64,000 bases of DNA from Orbicella franksi (lineage: Eukaryota): NCBI GenBank assembly GCA_964199315.1, contig OZ116703.1, forward strand, positions 744,001 to 808,000, written 5' to 3'. Of this stretch, positions 46,398-59,579 are shown in pieces; position 1 is the stretch's first letter; every line of letters starts with the position of its first letter. A program made the translations under genes and the position numbers. A model generated the notes under the pieces. The model saw nothing but the letters and a program-made list of their open reading frames with translations, made no database searches and was not told the origin of the DNA.

Positions 46398-49300
46398 ATG
46401 AGGATACGTTTCCTTGTCTCTGTGATAGTTTGCGTTGGTTTATCGGTTGATTCAGGTAAGACTCATTATTGCATTCATACCGAAATCTTGTCAAAATTTT
46501 ATGGTTGGTATTCAGTGCATTTTTTATTTAACGAGCGTGCTTTGTATATGAGACGGTAGATAGCCAACGACGCGCGTGGCGCCTCGTTGGCTATAATCAT
46601 CTCATATCCAACAAGCACGAGTGGAATAATTGTTCAGTATTAAAAACGCGCCCAAAATATAGAAAACTAATCTAAAATAAAAATAAAAAACGCCCCAAAA
46701 AATTACGTGTACGCTTACCTCATTTGTAGAGCATGGTATAATGGCTCATGACCTACGATGGCTGAGCCAATGAAAACTCTCGAATTGCATTATCCAATGA
46801 TCCAGTTTTTATATATATTAAATTTATGGGTTGTACATCAGTGATCAAAACATACTCTCCGGTGATTTTTTTTTTTGTCCCTTGTTTGCTTGGAAAAATA
46901 TAAGAGAGACATGATGTTGATGACGGTTGGAAATTAGAAGAATATTTAGCGCTCAGCGCTAGAGAACCTATGCCAGAACGCAGCAGCAAGTGTGCTAATG
47001 TGTCATGTATTTTTTTGTTACTCACAGCTCCGCTCGATGTTCGTGTCGCAAAAGGTAAGATATCACCTATCTATGCTTTAATGTCTGGGGACCAAATCGA
47101 ATAGACTGTTTTTCTTTCCGTAGAACGTTGATTGAAATTTTTTTTTTTCATCAACATTCTCAGAGGGCTATCCACTGTCGTGCATTTTCTTCATGACTCA
47201 TCATTCTTTATTTATTCTTTGAATAATTTATTTGTTACTTAGAGCTCTCGTCAAGACTCCATAGAAGGCAGATTGCAAATCAAGGTGAGATTAAACGGGT
47301 GGTTAATCATGCGAGGGGAGGGAGAGAACCTGTTCACACGCTAGTGTTAAGTTCACACTATGACTCACCACATAGAAAAAAAGACTGAAGAGTGATAGCT
47401 TAGGGCCGAGTCCCAGCAAACACAAATAAATTCAGCGCTTTTCGTTCCACCTATTCACTTACATCTCTGACTGGTCCGACTTCGGCTTCTAATTGAACCT
47501 GGAATAAACATAAACCTTAGCGTTTCTCTCAGCGTTCCGTTTTACCATATTTGCTTCTTACGACCACTCGGATTCCAGAATAGAACCGGCAAGAAGCAAA
47601 TTTACTTCACGAATCAGTAGTGCCACTAGTTCCGCGGGTCGCGTTTGCTACGTTGATGAATAATCACATTTAGATTTTTAATAAAATTATTTCACTTTTC
47701 AGGATACCTTGGTTACCCAGGATACTCGACATCCTCATCGCAATACACTGCAAACCAAAATGGAGCGTCACAAGTAGGCTCCATACCTTCACGTAAGTAC
47801 ATGATTTAAACCGGGCGGATTATAAGTTAGTGGTAACTTTAAAGATAACATAGGTTTTCGAGAAGTTTCCAAAAGATCTTCTATTGGTTTTTGATTTGTT
47901 TTTTGCTTGTGATATTTTGGACCTCAGCAACGAATTTTGAATTTCCAATAAACCAAGCAATACTTACTGAGAATTAAAGACAAACAAACAACTTTGCATA
48001 CTTAAACAAGATAGATTTTGAAAGAATGAAAGATGCGAATGCAGCCATGACACTACTGGAAAAATGACCTGAAAAAATTTCAGGCTCTGAACGGGATTCG
48101 AACCCACGACCTTTACGTTACCGGTGTAGTGCTCTACCAACTGAGCTATCAAAGCCACATGAGAGCGGTCGTGTGTGAGTTCGGCCCTACATGTTCAGTG
48201 GACGTAATACTCGGCTCAAGCATATGAATTCCATATAGGGCCGAACTCACACACGACCGCTCTCATGTGGCTTTGATAGCTCAGATGGTAGAGCATTGCA
48301 ACGGTAACGCGAAGGTCGTGGGTTCGAATCCCGTTCAGAGCCTGAAATTTTTTCAGCTCATTTTTCCAGTAGTGTCATGGCTGCATTCCCATCTTTCATT
48401 CTTTCATTTAATTGCTACTGTTGGACATCTATTACCAAGATAGATTTTACGAACTAAACTTTTGCCTGCAACACCACGCAACTCAGAAAACTATTATAAC
48501 CATAACAGTCTATGAGAGTCCATCTAATGGGGGGCTATATTGACAAATCTCTTTGCCTTGTTCAAAACAGAAGCCTCGAATTCAGCTAGTTGGAACAGCA
48601 GTCCCCAAGCAACAGTTGCATCAACTACAACAACGGAAAGTGGACAACAGCAACTAGCAACCCAAAATGGTGCTCAAGTTGTCCCTGCGCAAGCCAACTA
48701 TTCTTCAGCCCAACCATCTTTGGCATCTGCTGACACAACATTCAGCAACGACAGTTCTTCCACACTAGAGTTTACCTCACAGCAATCATCAGTGAATTCT
48801 TATAACTCTACAGCTCCATCTTCACAAAATTCGACCGTAAATAACGGCTATCCGGTATATTACGTGTCCAATTATGAAGAGCCCAATTTGCAACAAACAA
48901 CTTCGCAGCCTATGTCAAATGCAACAGCTAATTCATCTGTTCCATCTCAAGCATCCGAAAGTAATGCAACTGAAAATGCAAATAATAACAGCTATCCAGT
49001 ATTCTATATAACCAGTCCTCCTAACGAAAAACAACAAACACCTGTTTTCAGCAACAGCTCTGCACCGCCTACTACGTCACCAGAAAGCCCATCAAGAAAT
49101 AATGGTACCTACAATTATCCAATTTATTACGTTAGCAATTATAACGAGGAAGCGCAGCAGACACCAATAACTACCACCGTTAATAGCACCAATACGTTTT
49201 CGAATACCTCGAAAGGAAATAACACGTTGAATGAACAAGCCTACAGCTATCCTGTGTATAACGTAGGCGGCCCGAAATCAGAGCAGGAAAGCACAAGCCA

Positions 49301-52191
49301 AGAATCGAAAACCAAATTTATAAATTCGCCTGTTTCTTACGAAATAATCAACAGTTCATCTGTTTCTCAAAGTAATGCATCTCAACCAAATGTTGGCAGC
49401 TCCTCCTCTGCTACAACGCTATCTAACAATACTCAGCCATCAGCAATAAGTGGTAGCTATGCCTCTTCACCCGAAGCAGCAGCTCCGTCTACCTCACAAA
49501 CAACGTCTGTGCCGGTATCACAGCCAGCAACCACTTCTTACAACTATCCTTCGGCCCCTACCTTGTACCAGATGACCAATTTAACAACTTCACCATCCAC
49601 GCCACAGCAAACATCTAACTATTACGGTTCTCCTGCAGGCCCTCCGTCTCCTGCTACATACCAAGCCTATGGAGCACCCTCGACTTCTGCATACCCAGCA
49701 CCTGCGCCTGCTCCACAACCAGCACCCAGTTATTATAGCTACCCTGCTAACCAAGCATCTGCTGCTCCTTCACCATCACCTTCACCTGCACAATCCCCTG
49801 CACAGCCCGTAGTAGCCAGCTCTTATCCTTCAACAGCTCTTTCCCCAGCTCCGACTCCATCTCCAGCGTCAGCGCCAGCACCAGCACCAGCACCACCTCC
49901 AGCTTCGGAACCTAATCGAATCTCTGGTGTATCCTCTTCTCCTCCATTCCCACCAGCATCAGCATCTTCCTCCTCTCCTGGAACTCAATCCCCGGCTAAC
50001 ACCCAAGCCTCTAGTTCTGTTGCCAAGCCATCGCCCCCATCATTGCCAGTTTTAAATTCGGAATACGAAAATGCGTCGTACATCATTGCAACGCCTCCAG
50101 ATAAAGACACAGTCCTCTTTCTCCCCTCTCCCTCGCATCCTTTCTCATCAGAAACGACCCAAGCTGAAAACTCTACTATCGTGAGTAATTCTACTCTCGC
50201 AGTGACAAACGCTTCAGCTGAAAGTAGTTCATCTCCTACAATAAATGCAACATCTCTAGTTAATGCCACTGCTCCTGAAATTACAGTACCTGCAAATGCT
50301 ACAAGTATCAAAGTCGAATCCTCAAACAGTACAATACCCGCTTCACAAGAAACAAATTCCTCCGTTGCAGTTATTCCCCAAAACATCTCTTTCCCTGGCT
50401 TGGGCTGGCTTGAGAAAAACACTACTTCTTTAAGCAACATGACTTCCCTGACTAATTCTTCATTGGAAACACCCTCTTCCACCCCTGTCCCGAAAAATCC
50501 TATCAGCTCAACGACTCCAGCACCACAGCCACCGTCAGCAACAACTGCACCAATAATCATGGTTTCACCTTTTGCTCCATCATTGGACAATACCAGTCCA
50601 GCTCCTGTAGTGCCTTCCCATTCAAATGGCACGTTAAACAATCCGCCTTCAGGATCACAGTTGAATTCTCCTCCGATAGTCATGACAAAGCCTCCTCCAT
50701 CACACCTGTCTCCGACTCCTCCACCGGCACCTGCGCCTGTCGCTCATCCTGTTCTGGTAACGACAAAACCTCCCTCAGCTGGTTTACATACCACTACCAA
50801 ACCTAAGCCGAAAGAGTGGGGCTTTGGAGACAAGTATCTAGGTAAGTAAAATCGCACATTTGTAAACTTACAAGTTTGGCACATATGTTAGACGTCACCC
50901 ATTTCTGTAACTTTCTGTAGTAATGACTCTGTACATCCCGCCCATTCCGCGTGCCCACTTATTTAAAATGATTTGTCTTGAGCAGTCCTGTTAATGCAAC
51001 ATTTTCTTTTGTTCTTTTCCCTGTCCTTTACAAAGCTTTTGTTTGAATTGTATTGTTTATCGTAAACTCTTGCAATGAGGTAGTCTTAAAAAATCGAAAA
51101 TCTGTTCATTGTGCGATGCCTGTAAGACACCTGCATCATAGAAAATACTATACAGTGTGTGTCAAATGACAGGTTAAAGTAAAAGTTAACTAACGTAATG
51201 AACCCATAGGCTGACTGCTTGTTACTCGTTTGTAACAGTTTTACCCAATTTAGTGTTAAATCTGAACATATTGATAATTTTCTCATGTATGGAACTGTTA
51301 TTTCTTGCAGCCTCTCAAAATCAACGAGCTCGTCACAGGAACGTCATATTTGATGGCATCGCGGGTGACAGTCAGTGTAAGTATTTAACCAGATCAGCTA
51401 AATAACACAGTTTCTAAACTCAAAATGTCCTGATCAGTTTTATTATCAATGAAGACAGAAACTGGGCAACCTTTAACGCGAACAAAGTTAGCCAGAGTTT
51501 CAAGAGCTTCTGGTAATTGCTACTAAGCATCTAGCATCTGTCTTCCTCGTGCCTCGTGGCACATAGGGCCTTTACAGAGGTCCTCCACTTTTCTCGGTCT
51601 GCTGCGATCGTTCTCGTTTCCTCCCATGAACTCCACCCCGCCTCTTTCCGTTCCCTTTCTAGTGTTCGTCTACACGTTGTCTTGGGCCTTCCTCATCTCC
51701 TTTTCCCTTGTGACACCCAGCTTATTGCGATGTTACAATCATTATTGCACGCGATCTGGCCTCAGGATGTGACCAATCAGTTTTCATCTACGATACATCA
51801 CTTCCTTGCTCACCGGTTTCATGCTCGCTCTTGCCAACAGTTCCTCACTACTGACATGATATAACCACTAAATTTGATACTAACTCATGAAAATGGTCGA
51901 TGCCCATTTTGGTTGAACATTGGTCCTCTTAATAAATCATAAGATTTCTGGCTAATATTATAGAAATGGATTTCAAAACGCGCTTACTATATAAATGCTG
52001 AATTGCTGAACCTTAAGTTGCCCTCTCAGACTTCACGGTGATAATTCTTTTACTATTATTTTTCTTGAAAATAACAATAATTCTTGCCTGTTTTCGTCTC
52101 CACAGCTTACAGTAATTATCAAGTTTTAAGTCAACAAGAAGTATTCTTTCCAAAACATGGAAGAAAAAGAAGAAGCCAACCTGCCACTTAA
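46398..52191 (+). CDS. Gene 4: secreted mucin-like S/T/P/N-rich protein with a C-terminal ARHRNV module (about 879 aa)
   Basis: Exons 46398-46455 (signal peptide MRIRFLVSVIVCVGLSVDS), 47028-47054, 47243-47284, 47703-47792, 48571-50841 (the 769-aa ORF), 51311-51376 and 52106-52191. All introns are phase 1 and GT-AG. The protein has many N-x-S/T sequons and APAPAP runs, and ends FFPKHGRKRRSQPAT. Confidence 0.82.
48020..48435. mobile_element. tRNA-derived element, family B: 170-bp inverted arms with tRNA-like heads (48083-48156 minus, 48269-48342 plus) and a 13-bp TSD, in gene 4 intron 4
   Basis: Arms are 48020-48189 and 48236-48405. The acceptor stem is 8 bp (GGCTTTGA/TCAGAGCC) and the loop carries GGT. 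CAAGATAGATTTT lies at 48007-48019 and 48436-48448. Confidence 0.8.
51524..51862 (-). mobile_element. 3' end of an RTE-clade LINE in gene 4 intron 6
   Basis: Minus strand translates as WVSQGKRR*GRPKTTCRRTLERERKEAGWSSWEETRTIAADREKWRTSVKALCATRHEEDR, a typical RTE ORF terminus, followed by a short tandem tail (AGATGCT)2. Confidence 0.8.
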
Positions 52192-53786
52192 ATCCTATTT
52201 TTCAAACACGCTTGATCATTTATATTCAGGTCAATGCGGGGATCGTCTCGTTCCTTGTGAGCCATTACTTTCTAAAGCCACAGAATGTATATTGATCTTT
52301 TGTAAATAGTTAATGTAACTGCAAATTATCGAGTTCAAACGTATTTTGAAGACATATAACCTTGCAGTTGAAACATTTTAACATTGTAACAGAATTTCAC
52401 AATGTTGGCTTTCCCTGTTTAAAGCAAGAAACCCTAAAGTGTGACTACGTTAATACTATCCAATCAAAAGCTAAGAAAAGCCATCGTCGGCATCTGATTG
52501 GATAGTCTACACGCATGAAAGAATTCATTAAAATTAGTCACATTTTTGGGCTCCTTGATGTAATATTTTGTTCCTGGCATCATGGATCGAAGAGGTTCAT
52601 TTCAGTCAATACTATCTTAAACTCTATGAAATCGTGAGGCTACCGTAGATGGAATTTTCAGATGATGTACATTTGAACAGTGGGTGATACGATGGTATCA
52701 AATAACGAGTTTATTTCAACAATATAGACTGTAAAAATGTTCAGAAATTGTGAAAGTGGCTTGTTGAAAATGGCGAGGTTTCAACTACAAAAACATCAGT
52801 ACACATGGCGCCTGGTGGTACAGTTATTTGTCTGGTGAACGCAACATTTGTATGAGAGCAGCAGTGTCTATTTATTCGACGTTATTTACGTTAGAACAAA
52901 ACCAAATAAATGTCATATTTTCTTCATGTTTGTCGTATAATTTCGCTTGGTACTTTTTCCGATAGAGCAGAAACTTCCTGACCCTTTCTACCCGGGACTG
53001 AATTCAAAGTCTGTAAACGTAAAGTCTTGTACACCTCACTTAATACTGTAGTATAGGCTCAATATCCCGTCCCAGAGAGCTCAGTCATTTAATTTCATCT
53101 AAACACAAATACCCCAGGCTACATGGATAGCCCAAATGAGAAAATACTGGTCCTTACATTCGGAACATTGATGTTTTAAAAGATGGACCAAAATGAATCA
53201 TTTATGATAAAATGGAACACACTACAAATAACTAACAAAATAAGGTTGTTTATTCATCTCCCACTGTCATAAATTCGATATATACAGATTTCAGATTTGA
53301 TGCGCTTGTTAAAGAGTCCATTGCTAGAACCTCAGATTAGTGGAGTCGCAACTTCTTCCTTAATGTTTTCCTTAAATAAAAAAAATAGGACAAGAATTAA
53401 AGCCAACTATAAATCCACATGATTTCTTACGAATCATATACACCTGCGCGCTGGCTAGGTTAGAGGGGACAGTCGTGCGTCAGCGGTTTCTCTTAAAAGA
53501 AACGTGTCTTACAGATTCTGACTGAAGATTACTGGGCACTAATCCATTAATGTACTCTGTTGTTTTGGCTAATCTCTTAGTAAAGTTCCCGATTTTTTTA
53601 TTAACCAATGGAAAAACACCACGAGTGCTCAAGAGTACTCCGAAAGATGCCACTTCATGATAAGACACAAACTATTGGCCTTATTCACGTCTTAAAAACA
53701 GAGATCTTCATCATCTGGTTCTAGTTCCGATGGCTGAAAAACGTACTTAATCTTTTAAGTATTTGTACAATGTATAGGCTGTATTC

Positions 53787-56700
53787 TTACTCTGTCTTCA
53801 TCTCCTGCTCTTCAGCTGATCTCTTTTTGTGATGAATTAAGATGTGCTGCCGTGTGAGCACGGGGCTACTGGAACCTACAACAAAGTTACAGCGACAAAA
53901 TCAAGTTGACACGTCAGTAAAAGAAACAACAACTTCTGAAATAACAAGCAGACAAACAACAACAACTTTCATTAAAATGCAGGACTGTCCACAAATGTTG
54001 GAGAGCTCGTGTGATAGGTTTTAACTAATGGTAGCCAAACGAACTCCGAGAATTAATCAGACAAGACAACTCCAAGGCCATAACATTTGGGATTCCAGAC
54101 TGGGTTTTCTGTTCTGCTTAAAAATTGCTGCCACTCGCTCGTACGTTTTGGTGCCTAGATGTCGTCAATGATAGTTAATTATGTTGACGGTGAGCTGTCT
54201 CGACAAGTACCACACTCTAAGATAAGAAGTTGTTTTAAGTAATTCTGGGTTACCAGACATTTCCAATTGGAAAGTTCAATTCCGTTAGGCTTGTTTTTTC
54301 CATTAGGATATTTTTCGAGTTTACTGCACTTTACAGAACTGTGTTCTTACCGTAGGGATCTCCACCAACGGAATCAAAATAAACATTTCTGTGTCTTGCA
54401 GCATAATTTAACCTGGCTAGAAAATAGAGTAACCAATTAATATTTTAAATTATTAGTAAATATAATGCAAGTAGTCATAGCGAATCCCACCAATCCGAAG
54501 GCTGGAAATTCATTGTATACATTATCTTACCCAACTTGTGCCACAGTCATGCAGTAAGGTAATTGTCAATGTTAGATTAGTGTAAGTTTCCTGCTCTGAT
54601 CAATGTGTTGCTGAGTTCATCCTGCATGTGGTTAATCATTTACTTACCAATGCTATCTCGTTTCGCGGCTGGTTGGACGGTTAGTGGACTGGATTGCACG
54701 GCTGGGTAATATTGACTGATGGCACCAGCTTAAAAGGAATGAATTTTTTGAAACATTAGCAAAATGGTTTTCCAAGCCAATGCCATATCCATTGTTTTCT
54801 ACATGGCAATATAATGTCATTGATCTAACGTATACCAGCAGGATCATCGTCTGTGGTTACTTGCTTAAACATTTTATGTCATTTGTCATTTTTTAGCTCT
54901 GAATAGGGAACAACTCCGAAACTTACCGATTGCCGCGTTTGTTGTACCTTCACCTATCCTCACCAAATCAAATGACACACAGGGCCTAGATGTCATGACT
55001 AGTAGCTACTTAAAAATCACTGTATAGAATTATGTCACGCTATTGTTAGAAAGGGAGTGCAAGTTTTGTCATATCCGAATACCAAAAAGCTATTTTTTAA
55101 AATTACTAGAGTAAGCGTTTGACCAACAGTGTAGTCCACGTGCAAATGTGAAAAAAGATGTGAGAAAAGGCATAAAAAAGTCATCTACATGAAGGTATCG
55201 CTCAGTTGCTTGTATCTGAATGGTCGAGCACAACGATTCCACAACTTTCACTATTCAGTTCAGACCTGAAACCGATCAGGCTTTTCTTGTTGATCAACAG
55301 AATTATACATTTTGTTTGTTTACTCACGTGCAGACACTAATTCAGCTTGTGGAACTGATCTTCGCTTCTTGTGAGGGACAGCAATATGTGATCGGGTAAG
55401 CACGGGACTGCTGTGACCTATTTTAATAAAGTAAACGAAAAATGCCAGTTTGAGAAGCGTTGGATAAAACTGTTAAGATAGTGTATTACGTACTATACCC
55501 TTTCCCGGGGGAAGACTTCCTTATGAAAAGGTCGGGGATGCACGTCGTCTCGCTTAGGGGTATAGATCAAGGATTCTGGTCTCACTGAGGGTATTCATGA
55601 CGAAAAACCACTATTTTAGCTGTCAAAGTATTTTTAGCGTGCACTCAACGATAAATGATAAAAACACACTCTTATTTCCGTTTCTAGGCTCGATTTCCGC
55701 CAGTCTCTCGAGTCCACTCTATTAACGCGGGCTCCTGTCCTGAACAGCGGCCTGTAATCGAGGCTTTCCCTTTTAACTGGTGTCTTTTAGGGATCAAATA
55801 AAGCTCGAGCCACACCTATGGTACAATGTGGCACAATGTGGCGCAATGAGGCACAGTGTGGCGCAATGTGGTAAAATGTGGCACAATGTGGCGCAATGTG
55901 GTACAATGTGGCGCAATGTGACACAGTGTTGCGCAGTGTGCCAAAATGTGGTACAATGTGGAACAGGGTGGCACAATGTGGCGCAATGTCGCACAATGTG
56001 GCATAATGTGGCACAATGTGGCACAATGCGGCACAATGTAGCGCAATGAGGCACAGTGTGGCGCAATGTGGTACAATGTGGCACAATGTGGCGCAATGTG
56101 GCACAATGTGGTACAATGTGGCACAATGTGGCACAGTGTGGCGCAATGTGGCACAATGTGGTACAATGTGGCACAATGTGGCACAATGTTGCGCAATGTG
56201 GCACAATGTGGCACAATGTGGCACAATGTGGTACGATGTGGCACAATGTGGCACAATGTGGTACGATGTGGCACAATGTGGTACAATGTGACGCAATGTG
56301 GTACAATGTGGCGCAATGTGGCACAGTGGGGCGCAATGTGGCACAATTTGGTACAATGTGATGCAGGGTGGCACAATGTGGCGCAATGTGGCACAATGTG
56401 GTAGAATGTGGCGCAATGTGGTACAATGTGGCGCAATGTGGTACAATGTGGTACAATGTGGCGCAATGTGGCACAGTGGGGCGCAATGTGGCACAATGTG
56501 GCGCAATGTGGCACAATTTGGTACAATGTGATGCAGGGTGGCACAATGTGGCGCAATGTGGCACAATGTGGCATAATGTGGTACAATGTGGCACAATGTG
56601 ACGCAATGTGGCGCAATGTGGCGCAGTGTGGCACAATGTGGCACAATGTGGCGCAATGAGGCACAGTGTGGCGCAATGTGGTACAATGTGGCGCAATGAG

Positions 56701-59579
56701 GCACAGTGTGGCGCAATTTGGCACAATGTGGTGCAATTTGGCACAATGTGGTACAATGTGGCGTAATGTGGCACAATGTGGCGCAATGTGGCACAATATG
56801 GTACAATGTGGCACAATTTTGCACAATGTTGCTTAATGAGGCACAGTGTGGCGCAATGAGGCACAGTGGGGCGCAATGTGGTACAATGTGGCGCAATGTG
56901 GCGCAATTTTGTGCATTATGTCACAATTTGACGAAATGTGGTGCAATGTGGGGTTTAATTCAAATTTTCCGACGGACATCCCCGACCTTTTCATATGAGA
57001 GTTTCCCCGGGACTCTTTCCTACCATACGGATCTCCTCCGACCATGTCATAATAAACATTACGGTGTCTGGCGGCATGATTCAACTGCTCTGTGAAGACA
57101 AAAGTAACACAAACAGCATCAGAAAGAATGACTTACATAAAATCTACTTGTAACCTTCGGAAAATTATTTCTAGTAATATGTACACTGTTAAAAAAAAAT
57201 ATTTATAAGTAAAATAACTGAAAAAAAAAACTATTTGAGGGCTTCCTTATCTGGAACGAGAACTTGACGAATTGTAAAATTTGGTTTTAAATATTTTTTA
57301 GTTGTTTTTTTTTCCATACGAATCGTAAGGCTGATTTTAAAAATGAAGAAAAGGATGGCTCGTATATAGCAATCAGTTCTCTGAATTATGCTCTCTATCT
57401 ATAATGGTGTAATAACATTGATCACAAAAAAAAGAAACAATAGCCACAAGTAGGCATACCAATGGTATATCTTTTATCGTCATCTGGATGTCTTCCTGCA
57501 ATAACCTGCTCTTCAAAGAAAGCTGACGGGAGCTGACTTCCAGCGACATTTTGAGCTGAACAAAGAAAACAAATTAGTAAGGCTTATCTGCAAATTATGT
57601 GCTTTTGTTATAGCAGTTTTGAGAATGGATTTTGCCAACTGCATATACGTTTTCGAAGTGTTAAATCAATAAGCTAACAAGAAAGTACAAAGAAAATTTT
57701 TGTGCGTTATTTTCGCTCAATTCATGGAAGCTCAATACACTACCTATCTACCTAACACCCTATTTCCCTCAAAACCTAACTACCTACTATACTCACGTGA
57801 TTCGGCCGGCATAAGAGATCTCCTCTTCTTGTGAGGGACAGCAATATGTGAACGCGAAAGCACGGGACTGCTGTGACCTATTTCACGGGGTGTAAAAACA
57901 AGCTATTTTAGCACAGTAATATACACACCATATCGGCTTGACCTGTGAATATATGTTGGCATGACGTATTTTCCTGTTAAGCAACCTGTCCAATTTCACT
58001 TCCCCATTCTTCCTCCATCCCACTCCTTCCCCACCCGTATTGTTCACTTTTGTTATCTTCTGTTTTATCTTTTGACTAGCCATCTATTTTGACCTATTCT
58101 ATGATTGGCTATCTAAGCAAAGCATAATGCAGCCAGTCAAGAATTTGAAATTTATATTTTTCTCACCATAAGGGTCGCCTCCAACGGTGTCGAAATAAAC
58201 GTTACGGTGTCTGGCAGCATGGTTAAGCTGTTCTGTGAGAATAAAATTACAACACCGCAAAAAAATTAAAATATATAAACATTTACTTAAAAAGCAGGGT
58301 GTGGTTAGTAAATGTTTGAAGGAAGCGAACTAATAATCACAACAGTGAGACATACCAATTGTGTATCTCTTGTCATCGTCAGGATGTCGTCCTGTTGTGA
58401 TTTGCTCCTCAAAGAAAGCTGAAGGCAGCGGATTTCCAACAGTTTGGGCTGAAAAGCAAATACACAAACACAAATTGACGATCATTATTCCCTCGTAATT
58501 CAAATGTTTCCGAATGACTTGATTGGTTTATGTAGGTGATATTGGCGAGAGACCCATTTTCGTCACTACGAGCGCATATACAGAGTAGGGACTACATAGG
58601 AGGACTGCATATGTATGTGCATAGTGTTTTCTTGTGGCACATGGTAGCCATATTAATGTACCAAAACAACGCAATTCGGCTCTCCTTTGGAAAATGAAAT
58701 TAGGGTTTTTTTGGAAACTTTTGCTGTTTCTTAAGAGCAGAACCATAGCTGAGGCTTAAACCGTATGTATAAAGGACTTCTGCCATTACATCAAAAAACC
58801 GAGCTATGCATTACTTTTCTTCCCTTTCTTTTAAGCAGATACTGCGAGATTCGAACGACTCATCTAAGTGAATGCACTTTTTCAAAGTGCTTACTTACCA
58901 GTATCAACAGGATCAGGGATTTCACTCTTCTTAAATGGATTCATTCCATTTTGTCCCGCGTATGGTATTTCCCAACCTTAAGAGAGAAACATCAAACGTG
59001 ACTCTTGTAGTCTGCAAAGCCAGCCAATTACTCGAAAGACTGTTTGGCGTCGTTTTCCAATGGAACAAACAGTTTACTAATGGTAAGTCACACTTAAGCC
59101 CTTTTTGGTGGTTATGTAACATAACAATTCTACATACCAACAGGCAATAACGGTGTAAATCAGTGACGAATTCTGGCATGGGTAAGGTACAAATCGGTGT
59201 GCTTCAAACCCTTCCCCATGTTTGATTTAACTTTATGAATCGGTAAAGGAATATAGAGTTAAACTAACCTAACATTTGCCTTCTACACTAGCGTCCGAAT
59301 TTAATCTCTCGCTCTGTTTGAGGTAAAGATAACGGCTTTTGTGTGTCGCTATTACTACCAACCTCGCTCAGCGATTCAGTCGCCTGAGTGGGGTTCCCCT
59401 TGAACACAACACAATGAACTCGGCCAGGAGTCGAACCCACTCTTTTGGTTCCTCTGGCTGTACACCGGGTTCAAAATCAGTTTAGCAAACAAACTATTAA
59501 TAATTGCCTTTTTTCAAATACCTTTGCATAAGACAACGGCTCCACACAAGATACTGATTATGGGTATCAAACTTCCCAT
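53787..59579 (-). CDS. Gene 5: secreted prohormone-like precursor with three 41-aa repeated peptides (about 287 aa)
   Basis: Exons 59579-59522 (signal MGSLIPIISILCGAVVLCK), 58976-58899, 58448-58356, 58232-58167, 57877-57797, 57555-57460, 57089-57024, 55417-55328, 54728-54648, 54416-54351 and 53875-53787. All are phase 1, GT-AG and in frame (864 nt). Repeat copies differ mainly at third codon positions. A possible extra exon lies at 54998-54927. Confidence 0.85.
55505..57011. mobile_element. hAT-type MITE (8-bp TSD) expanded by an internal satellite, in gene 5 intron 7
   Basis: TIRs are CCGGGGGAAGACTTCCTTATGAAAAGGTCGGGGATG ... CATCCCCGACCTTTTCATATGAGAGTTTCCCCGGG. Flanks are ACCCTTTC (55497-55504) and ACTCTTTC (57012-57019). 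Confidence 0.75.
55818..56950. repeat. 10-bp tandem minisatellite (GGCACAATGT)n, about 113 units
   Basis: Variants include GGCGCAATGT, GGTACAATGT and GGCACAGTGT. A higher-order block of about 160 bp is repeated around 56300-56570. Confidence 0.97.

Follow-up and report, generated by a model that had tools for sequence, protein, structure and literature searches.

One peptide module in two convergent genes of the coral Orbicella franksi, probably the mark of an uncharacterised cnidarian family

Introduction

What is encoded by a locus in which one short peptide unit stands near the end of a large mucin-like protein and occurs three times in a smaller protein built like a prohormone? The question is raised by a stretch of 64,000 nucleotides (nt) of DNA from Orbicella franksi (contig OZ116703.1, positions 744,001 to 808,000). 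This whole stretch is called the window, and positions are counted from its first letter. Two genes of the window that converge tail to tail, here termed gene 4 (+ strand) and gene 5 (- strand), carry the unit. An earlier note on this DNA, made from the letters alone, had read them as an undescribed secreted system, in which one module is released as free peptides by gene 5 and displayed on a glycoprotein stalk by gene 4. We report here that the two genes are paralogues of long standing and that their module probably marks a family of its own.

The module exons and their transcription

A six-frame scan found RH[RK]N[VIL] four times in the window, every match lying within a unit of 22 residues. 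The units are encoded by exons of 66 nt with phase 1-1 and ag/gt borders, one in gene 4 (51311-51376, +) and three in gene 5 (58167-58232, 57024-57089 and 54351-54416, all -). Their consensus is xxxNxxARHRNVxFDxxGGDxx (n=4), and ten positions (N4, A7, R8, H9, R10, N11, V12, D15, G19 and D20) are invariant in the gapless alignment. When a profile of the four copies was run against the whole 497-Mb genome in six frames, these four were the only matches, with expectation values (E) of 8e-15 to 4e-12, the next match having an E of 0.7. A broader profile of 54 positions, built from many species, gave exactly eight places with E<0.2, i.e. the four module exons and the four partner exons downstream of them; all remaining matches stood above E 2.8. 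Scan, alignment and genome profile thus bear out the four phase 1-1 ARHRNV exons that the earlier note had described. Its further claim, that the exon after the module is also related between the two genes, is confirmed as a likeness that is weaker when taken alone (E 0.006-0.16 genome-wide with the 54-position profile). The partner exons have in common V-L-S/T-x-Q/S, a hydrophobic run and a basic cluster. The whole module comprises ~45 residues (22 + about 24) encoded by two phase-1 exons, and is laid out as a predicted helix (..I..LN.AARHRNV), then Y/I-F-D..GGD(PYG), then ..VLS.Q with a short hydrophobic stretch.

Two sources of RNA were used: a poly(A) metatranscriptome (X2), in the form of Logan contigs, and an unselected 2026 RNA run from adult coral (X24), in the form of raw reads. 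Module exons are included in transcripts, as contigs and raw reads splice the gene 4 module exon and the exon of the third gene 5 copy. The joints run from 50837/50840 to 51310 and from 51376 to 52106 in gene 4, and from 55328 to 54728, 54648 to 54416 and 54349 to 53873 in gene 5. Read coverage comprises the 3′ portion of gene 4, starting at 49800, and the five final coding exons of gene 5; the exons outside it rest on splice sites, open frame and identity with transcript-derived orthologs. If the depth at 53200-53399 is taken as the 3′ untranslated region (UTR) of gene 5, the 3′ ends of the two genes are ~300 bases apart.

A family of cnidarian proteins

A 48-position profile covering module and tail was searched against 1.84 billion representative proteins, and 64 matches were obtained, 14 of them below 1e-10. 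All source-named matches are cnidarian, and all are called 'uncharacterized' or 'hypothetical'. Members were found in Orbicella, Pocillopora, Montipora, Oculina, Desmophyllum, Acropora, Nematostella, Actinia, Exaiptasia, Dendronephthya, Xenia, Rhopilema, Sanderia and Hydractinia, and two architectures can be told apart. The repeat type, to which gene 5 belongs, holds two or three modules and is found in scleractinians (Orbicella, Pocillopora, Montipora, Oculina and Desmophyllum), anemones (Nematostella LOC116606013, Actinia and Exaiptasia) and octocorals (Dendronephthya and Xenia), and in a longer form of 300-580 residues in scyphozoans (Rhopilema and Sanderia) and one hydrozoan (Hydractinia). 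The stalk type, represented by gene 4, has one module after [WY]GFxDKYL. It ranges over scleractinians (750-880 residues), Nematostella (LOC116606012, 193 residues) and Actinia (238 residues), the stalks of the anemone orthologs being only about 100-150 residues long. A search with the module of the short stalk-type protein P0030 returned the query alone, and no stalk-type gene was found within 10 kb of the octocoral repeat-type gene.

The earlier note had failed to recognise the module among known families, and this view is upheld by the curated families and the literature that were searched. In Pfam, no match rose above noise for full-length proteins, for single exons or for 26 isolated modules; the stalk-type proteins P0002, P0018 and P0010 had no Pfam match at E up to 1, and the module profile had no match to PDB sequences at E up to 10. 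Full-text searches with motif strings, LOC identifiers and locus tags retrieved no paper that describes the module, nor was its sequence found in the supplements of Hayakawa 2019 and Koch & Grimmelikhuijzen 2020. The module is nearly fixed at ~20 positions from hydrozoans to reef corals (26 aligned modules), yet every source name leaves it uncharacterised and the Pfam copy searched holds no model of it. On the evidence of these searches, the module probably defines an uncharacterised secreted family, cnidarian among its source-named members.

Some features of individual members were noted in passing. Six long medusozoan members (P0022, P0027, P0029, P0031, P0056 and P0064) carry the motif [KR]-S-x-[IV]-P 8-15 times, whereas gene 5 retains a single KKSEIP. 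Medusozoan members have PYLG(G/Q)(D/N)L at two places, right behind the signal sequence and behind an internal RHRRS, and also bear an AYAEGYKAA helix. A short Cys cluster lies near the C-terminus of Nematostella P0026 (CKGCCC) and Exaiptasia P0028 (CCCVNGKC), at the very end in both, and of Desmophyllum P0102 (CHGCCC); it is missing from gene 5 of the window. The scleractinian gene 5 ortholog P0019 has a precomputed label, PF27337.1, an unconfirmed accession that is absent from the Pfam copy used and from relatives 85% identical to it. The UniRef label 'Zasp-like motif' on the Pocillopora ortholog P0104 was not reproduced, with no Pfam match at E up to 1.

Homology and linkage of the two genes

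A profile made from repeat-type modules only finds the stalk-type proteins (E 2e-7 to 0.025), and one made from stalk-type modules only finds the repeat-type proteins (E 1e-20 to 6e-5; Z = 1e6 for both). Against the 2853 open reading frame (ORF) pieces of the window, these cross-profiles matched only the correct exons. The reciprocal matches, together with the same two-exon structure and phase, establish the homology of the module in gene 4 and gene 5 that had been claimed. In a maximum-likelihood tree a long branch leads to a single clade (100/100) of the stalk-type modules, and therefore the two types do not result from a recent exon transfer: gene 4 and gene 5 are ancient paralogues that lie physically linked.

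The exon borders (ag|G...TAY|gt) are alike in scleractinians, in Nematostella and in the octocoral Dendronephthya. The three module copies of gene 5 differ by 10-14 synonymous changes, so their triplication is old. Copy 3 is nearest to Nematostella copy 2 and copy 1 to Nematostella copy 1, and these counts, taken within one 66-nt exon only, suggest a two-copy ancestor and one later duplication. For the gene 4 module exon, 10-11 synonymous and 0 non-synonymous differences were counted between the window and two other scleractinian loci, the module amino acids being identical in the two other corals. The introns flanking this exon look unrelated among the three corals, as judged by eye without alignment, and the stalks of gene 4 orthologs are only 33-47% identical (61% in the nearest match). 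Judged from its codon differences, the gene 4 module exon is under purifying selection.

The gene pair is convergent in the scleractinian loci L006 and L007, and likewise in Nematostella (locus L008), where a 173-residue gene on the + strand and a 193-residue gene on the - strand lie 556 bases apart. In Desmophyllum the two genes have adjacent locus tags, and in Actinia they lie on the same 219-kb scaffold. The lineages of anemones and stony corals parted hundreds of millions of years ago, and a tail-to-tail arrangement preserved over such a time suggests a shared constraint, for example common regulation. The pair can be tested directly in Nematostella, where knock-outs and cell atlases exist.

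A sceptical reader may point to the small size of the module, 22 + about 24 residues, and prefer chance resemblance or recent local exon copying without common function. Such an explanation is hardly conceivable. It is refuted by the genome- and database-wide profile statistics, and the exon borders conserved in an anemone and an octocoral, the 10-14 synonymous differences between copies of the window and the deep, well-supported split of the two types all speak against it.

Putative processing of the two precursors

Both proteins start with a hydrophobic, signal-like N-terminus (MGSLIPIISILCGAVVLCK and MRIRFLVSVIVCVGLSV, as read from the sequence). The first coding exon is 58 nt in both genes, as had been noted earlier, from ATG to donor at 46398-46455 and 59522-59579 respectively. 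In gene 4 (879 residues) the N-terminus is followed by a short pro-region up to RLHRR|Q, the stalk, the module and ...FFPKH-G-RKRR-SQPAT; RR|Q or KR|Q near the N-terminus is conserved in orthologs. The stalk has 46% Ser+Thr+Pro over 756 residues and 33 N-x-S/T sequons, there is no dibasic site between stalk and module, and the whole protein contains one Cys. Gene 5 (297 residues) consists of a signal-like start, one KKSEIP exon and three exon triplets (spacer, module, tail). Each of its three modules has KR before it and KKRR or KKR after it, an arrangement of flanking basic sites that recurs in all anthozoan orthologs, and no cysteine is found outside the signal sequence. The 41 residues between the basic sites include 5 His and are near neutral.

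In the alignment of 26 modules, all internal copies have a Lys/Arg run behind them, and such a run is present in both genes of the window. The modules without a downstream cluster, i.e. three medusozoan ones and the Nematostella stalk type, are all protein-terminal and mostly end in KKH. In the repeat-type orthologs of anthozoans, KR or KK stands three residues upstream of the module exon. Gly directly precedes the downstream cluster of gene 4 in all corals seen (KH-G-RKRR) and the cluster of both copies in the relatives from anemones and octocorals; some gene 5 copies of scleractinians have it with one residue between (PGHKKKR). A C-terminal amide, made by the peptidylglycine amidating enzyme, usually derives from a Gly that stands before a basic site.

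The best explanation that we can offer is that both products may be secreted, convertase-cut precursors whose pieces end in one module, and that a common partner recognises this module; we judge it about equally likely to be right or wrong. The products of gene 4 and gene 5 would enter the secretory pathway, and furin/prohormone-convertase-type enzymes would cut them at the basic clusters. Each released fragment would end with one module, gene 5 giving three such fragments and gene 4 one, and the N-terminal part of the pieces would range from a 30-residue spacer up to the 750-residue glycosylated stalk. If the conserved upstream KR were also cut, the fragments of gene 5 would be 41-residue peptides. 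Gene 4 would be trimmed at RLHRR|Q and at FFPKH-G-RKRR, leaving a fragment with the heavily glycosylated stalk at its N-terminal side, and the Gly before its cluster may point to C-terminal amidation. Because its conservation is extreme, the module might be the recognition element for one partner. The least certain steps are that a common partner, for example a receptor or binding protein, would recognise the module, and that the locus would encode free and stalk-borne forms of one secreted signal. In its fullest form, which we offer tentatively and hold to be doubtful, the ARHRNV module would be the active part of a pan-cnidarian long peptide signal that is older than the anthozoan-medusozoan split, made in free and glycoprotein-borne forms by genes lying tail to tail since the anemone/stony-coral ancestor, and received by one orphan receptor.

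Peptide data bear on the proposed cleavage. In the Nematostella peptidomics of Thiel et al. 2024, two repeat-type fragments are given on the sheet 'Poor' of Supplementary file 1; they start at the predicted signal-peptide cut and end just before G-KR (PMC11087051). By language-model features, the nearest proteins are multi-copy neuropeptide precursors with a score of 0.81, a value that shuffled proteins reach a third of the time, and it is a lead only.

Several observations weigh against convertase-cut precursors. First, the Nematostella fragments are graded poor and their upstream KR is uncut (PMC11087051), so the 41-residue peptide is unproven; the precursor is also not among the authors' proneuropeptides in Supplementary file 2 of that study. 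Secondly, gene 5 of the window has no Gly before its basic clusters (VPH-KKRR), and the same is true of medusozoan copies. Thirdly, medusozoan copies often have no upstream dibasic site and gene 4 has none, and conservation extends to the stretch before KR (GGRHP.DDKR), as is seldom the case in a spacer. AlphaFold2 predicted a helix and two strands (hairpin) for the module, with a predicted local distance difference test (pLDDT) value of 64.6, and one long helix for the gene 4 tail, with pLDDT 53.8, both of low confidence. Finally, the portions consulted of the Nematostella cell atlas supplements (PMC10946136) contain none of the guessed NV2 identifiers, and the guesses may be wrong.

One alternative is a structural role, in which the proteins would remain uncut and would touch one another through the module in mucus or in the extracellular matrix. 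With its three modules, the gene 5 product would cross-link gene 4 glycoproteins by their terminal module, somewhat as small partners bind mucins, and the basic clusters would bind acidic glycans instead of being cleavage sites. The conserved sequence around the upstream KR and its uncut state in the Nematostella fragments agree with this possibility, as do the mucin-like composition of gene 4, its stalk greatly lengthened in scleractinians and the multivalency of gene 5. The tight, conserved linkage of the pair fits joint use, and the medusozoan relatives are long, repeat-rich and disordered-looking. However, Gly before the basic cluster in many lineages marks peptide amidation and not matrix proteins, and the Nematostella fragments end exactly at G-KR. 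Neither gene's motifs occur in the portions consulted of the Nematostella matrisome supplements (PMC12549020), from which guessed identifiers, which may not correspond, are also absent. We consider an assembly module unlikely. A complex prediction for the Desmophyllum gene 4 tail and gene 5 module scored 0.00, which counts neither for nor against binding.

The module is C-terminal in every predicted fragment whatever the N-terminal cargo, and a helix is predicted at its start. It may be asked whether it serves inside the cell as a sorting or packaging tag, an amphipathic helix at fragment C-termini that directs or condenses granule cargo and has no role after release. Carboxypeptidase E and PC1/3 owe their sorting to granules to amphipathic helices at the C-terminus. 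In gene 5, however, the tag would be present three times with hardly any cargo, which makes little sense, and ~20 specific residues conserved from hydrozoans to corals exceed the needs of amphipathicity. This role seems improbable.

A last alternative is host defence. Here the gene 5 polyprotein would supply the mucus layer, next to the gene 4 glycoprotein, with peptides rich in His that act against microbes or bind metals. Antimicrobial peptides, too, arise from multi-copy precursors with dibasic sites, the unit between basic sites holds 5 His in 41 residues, and in the adult coral RNA of X24 the depth of gene 5 is several-fold above that of gene 4. But the peptide is near neutral and not cationic-amphipathic, and the fast evolution usual in defence peptides is not seen in this module, which hardly varies across the cnidarian classes sampled; a defence role is highly improbable.

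Comparison with known systems

The nearest known kind of protein to the putative convertase-cut precursor of gene 5 is the multi-copy preprohormone, such as the cnidarian GLWamide and RFamide precursors and the arthropod tachykinin and allatostatin precursors. Gene 5 resembles these in its signal sequence, its tandem conserved peptide with spacers, the di- to tetrabasic site after each copy, the Gly before the basic site in many orthologs and the lack of Cys outside the signal sequence. It differs from them, first, in the size of the unit (41-45 residues or more, as compared with 4-15), which is conserved over its full length across the cnidarian classes sampled; secondly, in that no described peptide family matches it and none of the cnidarian neuropeptide catalogues searched lists it; and thirdly, in that one paralogue bears the module on a 750-residue stalk with no dibasic site in front. 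To our knowledge, conservation between anthozoans and medusozoans is rare among the signalling peptides of cnidarians, and the known cases share only three or four C-terminal residues.

The CRF/urocortin/DH44 hormones are similar in length (about 41 residues). The C-terminus of the CRF type, which we take to be ..A-A-x-N-R-x-x-F/L-x-D-x-V/I, resembles AARHRNVYFDTV; the likeness was unsupported and was dropped. In the module the motif is internal, unlike that of CRF-type hormones at the amidated end, and membership of the CRF family was rejected with no PDB match and no Pfam match for any of the 26 modules at E up to 10.

Like mucins, gene 4 has a signal sequence, a long Ser/Thr/Pro-rich region, numerous sequons for N-glycosylation and a C-terminal end that is small and conserved, and its Montipora ortholog is named 'mucin-2-like' (NCBI). 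Unlike mucins, the gene 4 orthologs have no VWD, C8, TIL, cystine-knot, SEA or trefoil domains (Pfam, E up to 1). The term mucin-like, used of gene 4 in the earlier note, holds for the Ser+Thr+Pro and sequon content given above and fails for the mucin domains and for cysteines, of which there is a single one. A gel-forming, MUC2-like identity is ruled out by the absence of VWD/C8/TIL and cystine knot and by the one Cys, and the name refers to composition only. Granins are large, hydrophilic secreted proproteins that, like gene 4, carry sites of the convertase type close to either end and finish in a conserved peptide. The absence of a dibasic site between stalk and module sets gene 4 apart from them, and no sequence relation to granins was found.

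Of the undescribed secreted system that had been proposed, the module as a shared, ancient and undescribed element has stood, and so have the signal-peptide-like N-termini of both proteins. The module is also conserved and widespread far beyond what the letters of the window could show. The ideas of a free peptide and of its display are plausible proposals. If the module is a ligand, it would provide a new long peptide testable in receptor deorphanisation, and an unusual case of one peptide made both on its own and as the terminal part of a large glycoprotein. Should it be an assembly module, it would bear on how coral mucus or matrix is built.

Structure of gene 4 and gene 5

Gene 4 has 7 coding exons between 46398 and 52191 (+), joined by canonical splice sites. 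Exon 1 (46398-46455) comprises the ATG and the hydrophobic signal-like sequence and ends in phase 1 at a gt donor, the encoded N-terminus resembling that of the transcript-derived ortholog P0002. Exons 2-4 (47028-47054, 47243-47284 and 47703-47792) encode APLDVRVAK, ELSSRLHRRQIANQ and GYLGYPGY..., with the conserved RR|Q convertase-type site included. They were placed by tblastn of the P0002 and P0018 N-termini, canonical ag/gt borders and an open joined frame. The large exon (48571-50841), defined by its ORF and by the orthologs P0001-P0018, encodes the 756-residue stalk and ends in WGFGDKYL; an RNA contig covers its 3′ part and splices onward to 51311. The module exon (51311-51376) encodes ASQNQRARHRNVIFDGIAGDSQ and is spliced in X2. 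The last coding exon (52106-52191) encodes SYSNYQVLSQQEVFFPKH-G-RKRR-SQPAT and the stop, and has a genome-wide profile E of 0.06; its start at 52106, fixed by the splice joint in RNA, corrects the one given earlier for the exon after 51376. The 3′ UTR extends to about 52926, where a poly(A) loose end is found.

Two oddities of the RNA data fall within gene 4. A 30-nt stretch of the large exon (49873-49903) is matched by far deeper reads and contigs (up to ~1700 in X2; 26 reads in X24) that diverge into unrelated sequence on both sides, and is probably a short word in common with an abundant other transcript. At 51255-51592, one X1 contig contains the module exon and 200 bases of the next intron in unspliced form, which may be pre-mRNA, a retained intron or library DNA.

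Gene 5 has 12 coding exons between 59579 and 53337 (-), and its joined protein is identical at 293/297 residues to Orbicella faveolata LOC110062588. Exon 1 (59522-59579), with the ATG and the signal-like sequence, is followed by exon 2 (58899-58976), which encodes GWEIPYAGQNGMNPFKKSEIPDPVDT with one K-S-x-I-P motif. Repeat 1 (57797-58448) consists of a spacer (58356-58448), the module (58167-58232) and a tail (57797-57877) with the end ...VPH-KKRR-S...; it was placed by its canonical ag/gt borders, by the frame that stays open when its exons are joined and by its likeness to transcript-derived orthologs. Repeat 2 (55328-57555) is made up in the same order of 57460-57555, 57024-57089 and 55328-55417, and 29 reads carry a loose end at 55418 into the 57024 exon. 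Repeat 3 (53791-54728) has a divergent spacer (54648-54728), the module at 54351-54416 and a tail at 53791-53875, and all three of its joints are present in X24 raw reads and X2 contigs.

The last coding exon (53337-53370) encodes ..KTLRKKLRLH and the stop, and matches the C-termini of P0100 and P0117. A splice joint that removes 53371-53790 was seen in 27 X24 reads and one X2 contig, so that the protein ends in ...EKTLRKKLRLH, the last exon adding 11 residues. The stop formerly assigned to a TAA at 53787-53789 is not borne out, since this TAA is part of a GTAAG donor and the reads skip 53371-53790.

The intron between module and tail of gene 5 repeat 2 contains a 1.1-kb minisatellite (55819-56951) of about 110 units of about 10 nt (TGGCACAATG). 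It is flanked by 39-nt inverted repeats (55509-55547 and 56970-57008) that are 82% complementary, and the segment 55509-57008 has the look of a transposon-like insert that carries a satellite inside. At 55400-55600 there is an accumulation of RNA contigs whose loose ends are unrelated.

Upstream of gene 4, a 1085-codon open frame (37283-40540, +) contains a 57-nt tandem repeat at 37440-37941. In L006 and L007 a gene at the same place carries Pfam fn3_4 (PF16794), and therefore synteny reaches beyond the pair of gene 4 and gene 5.

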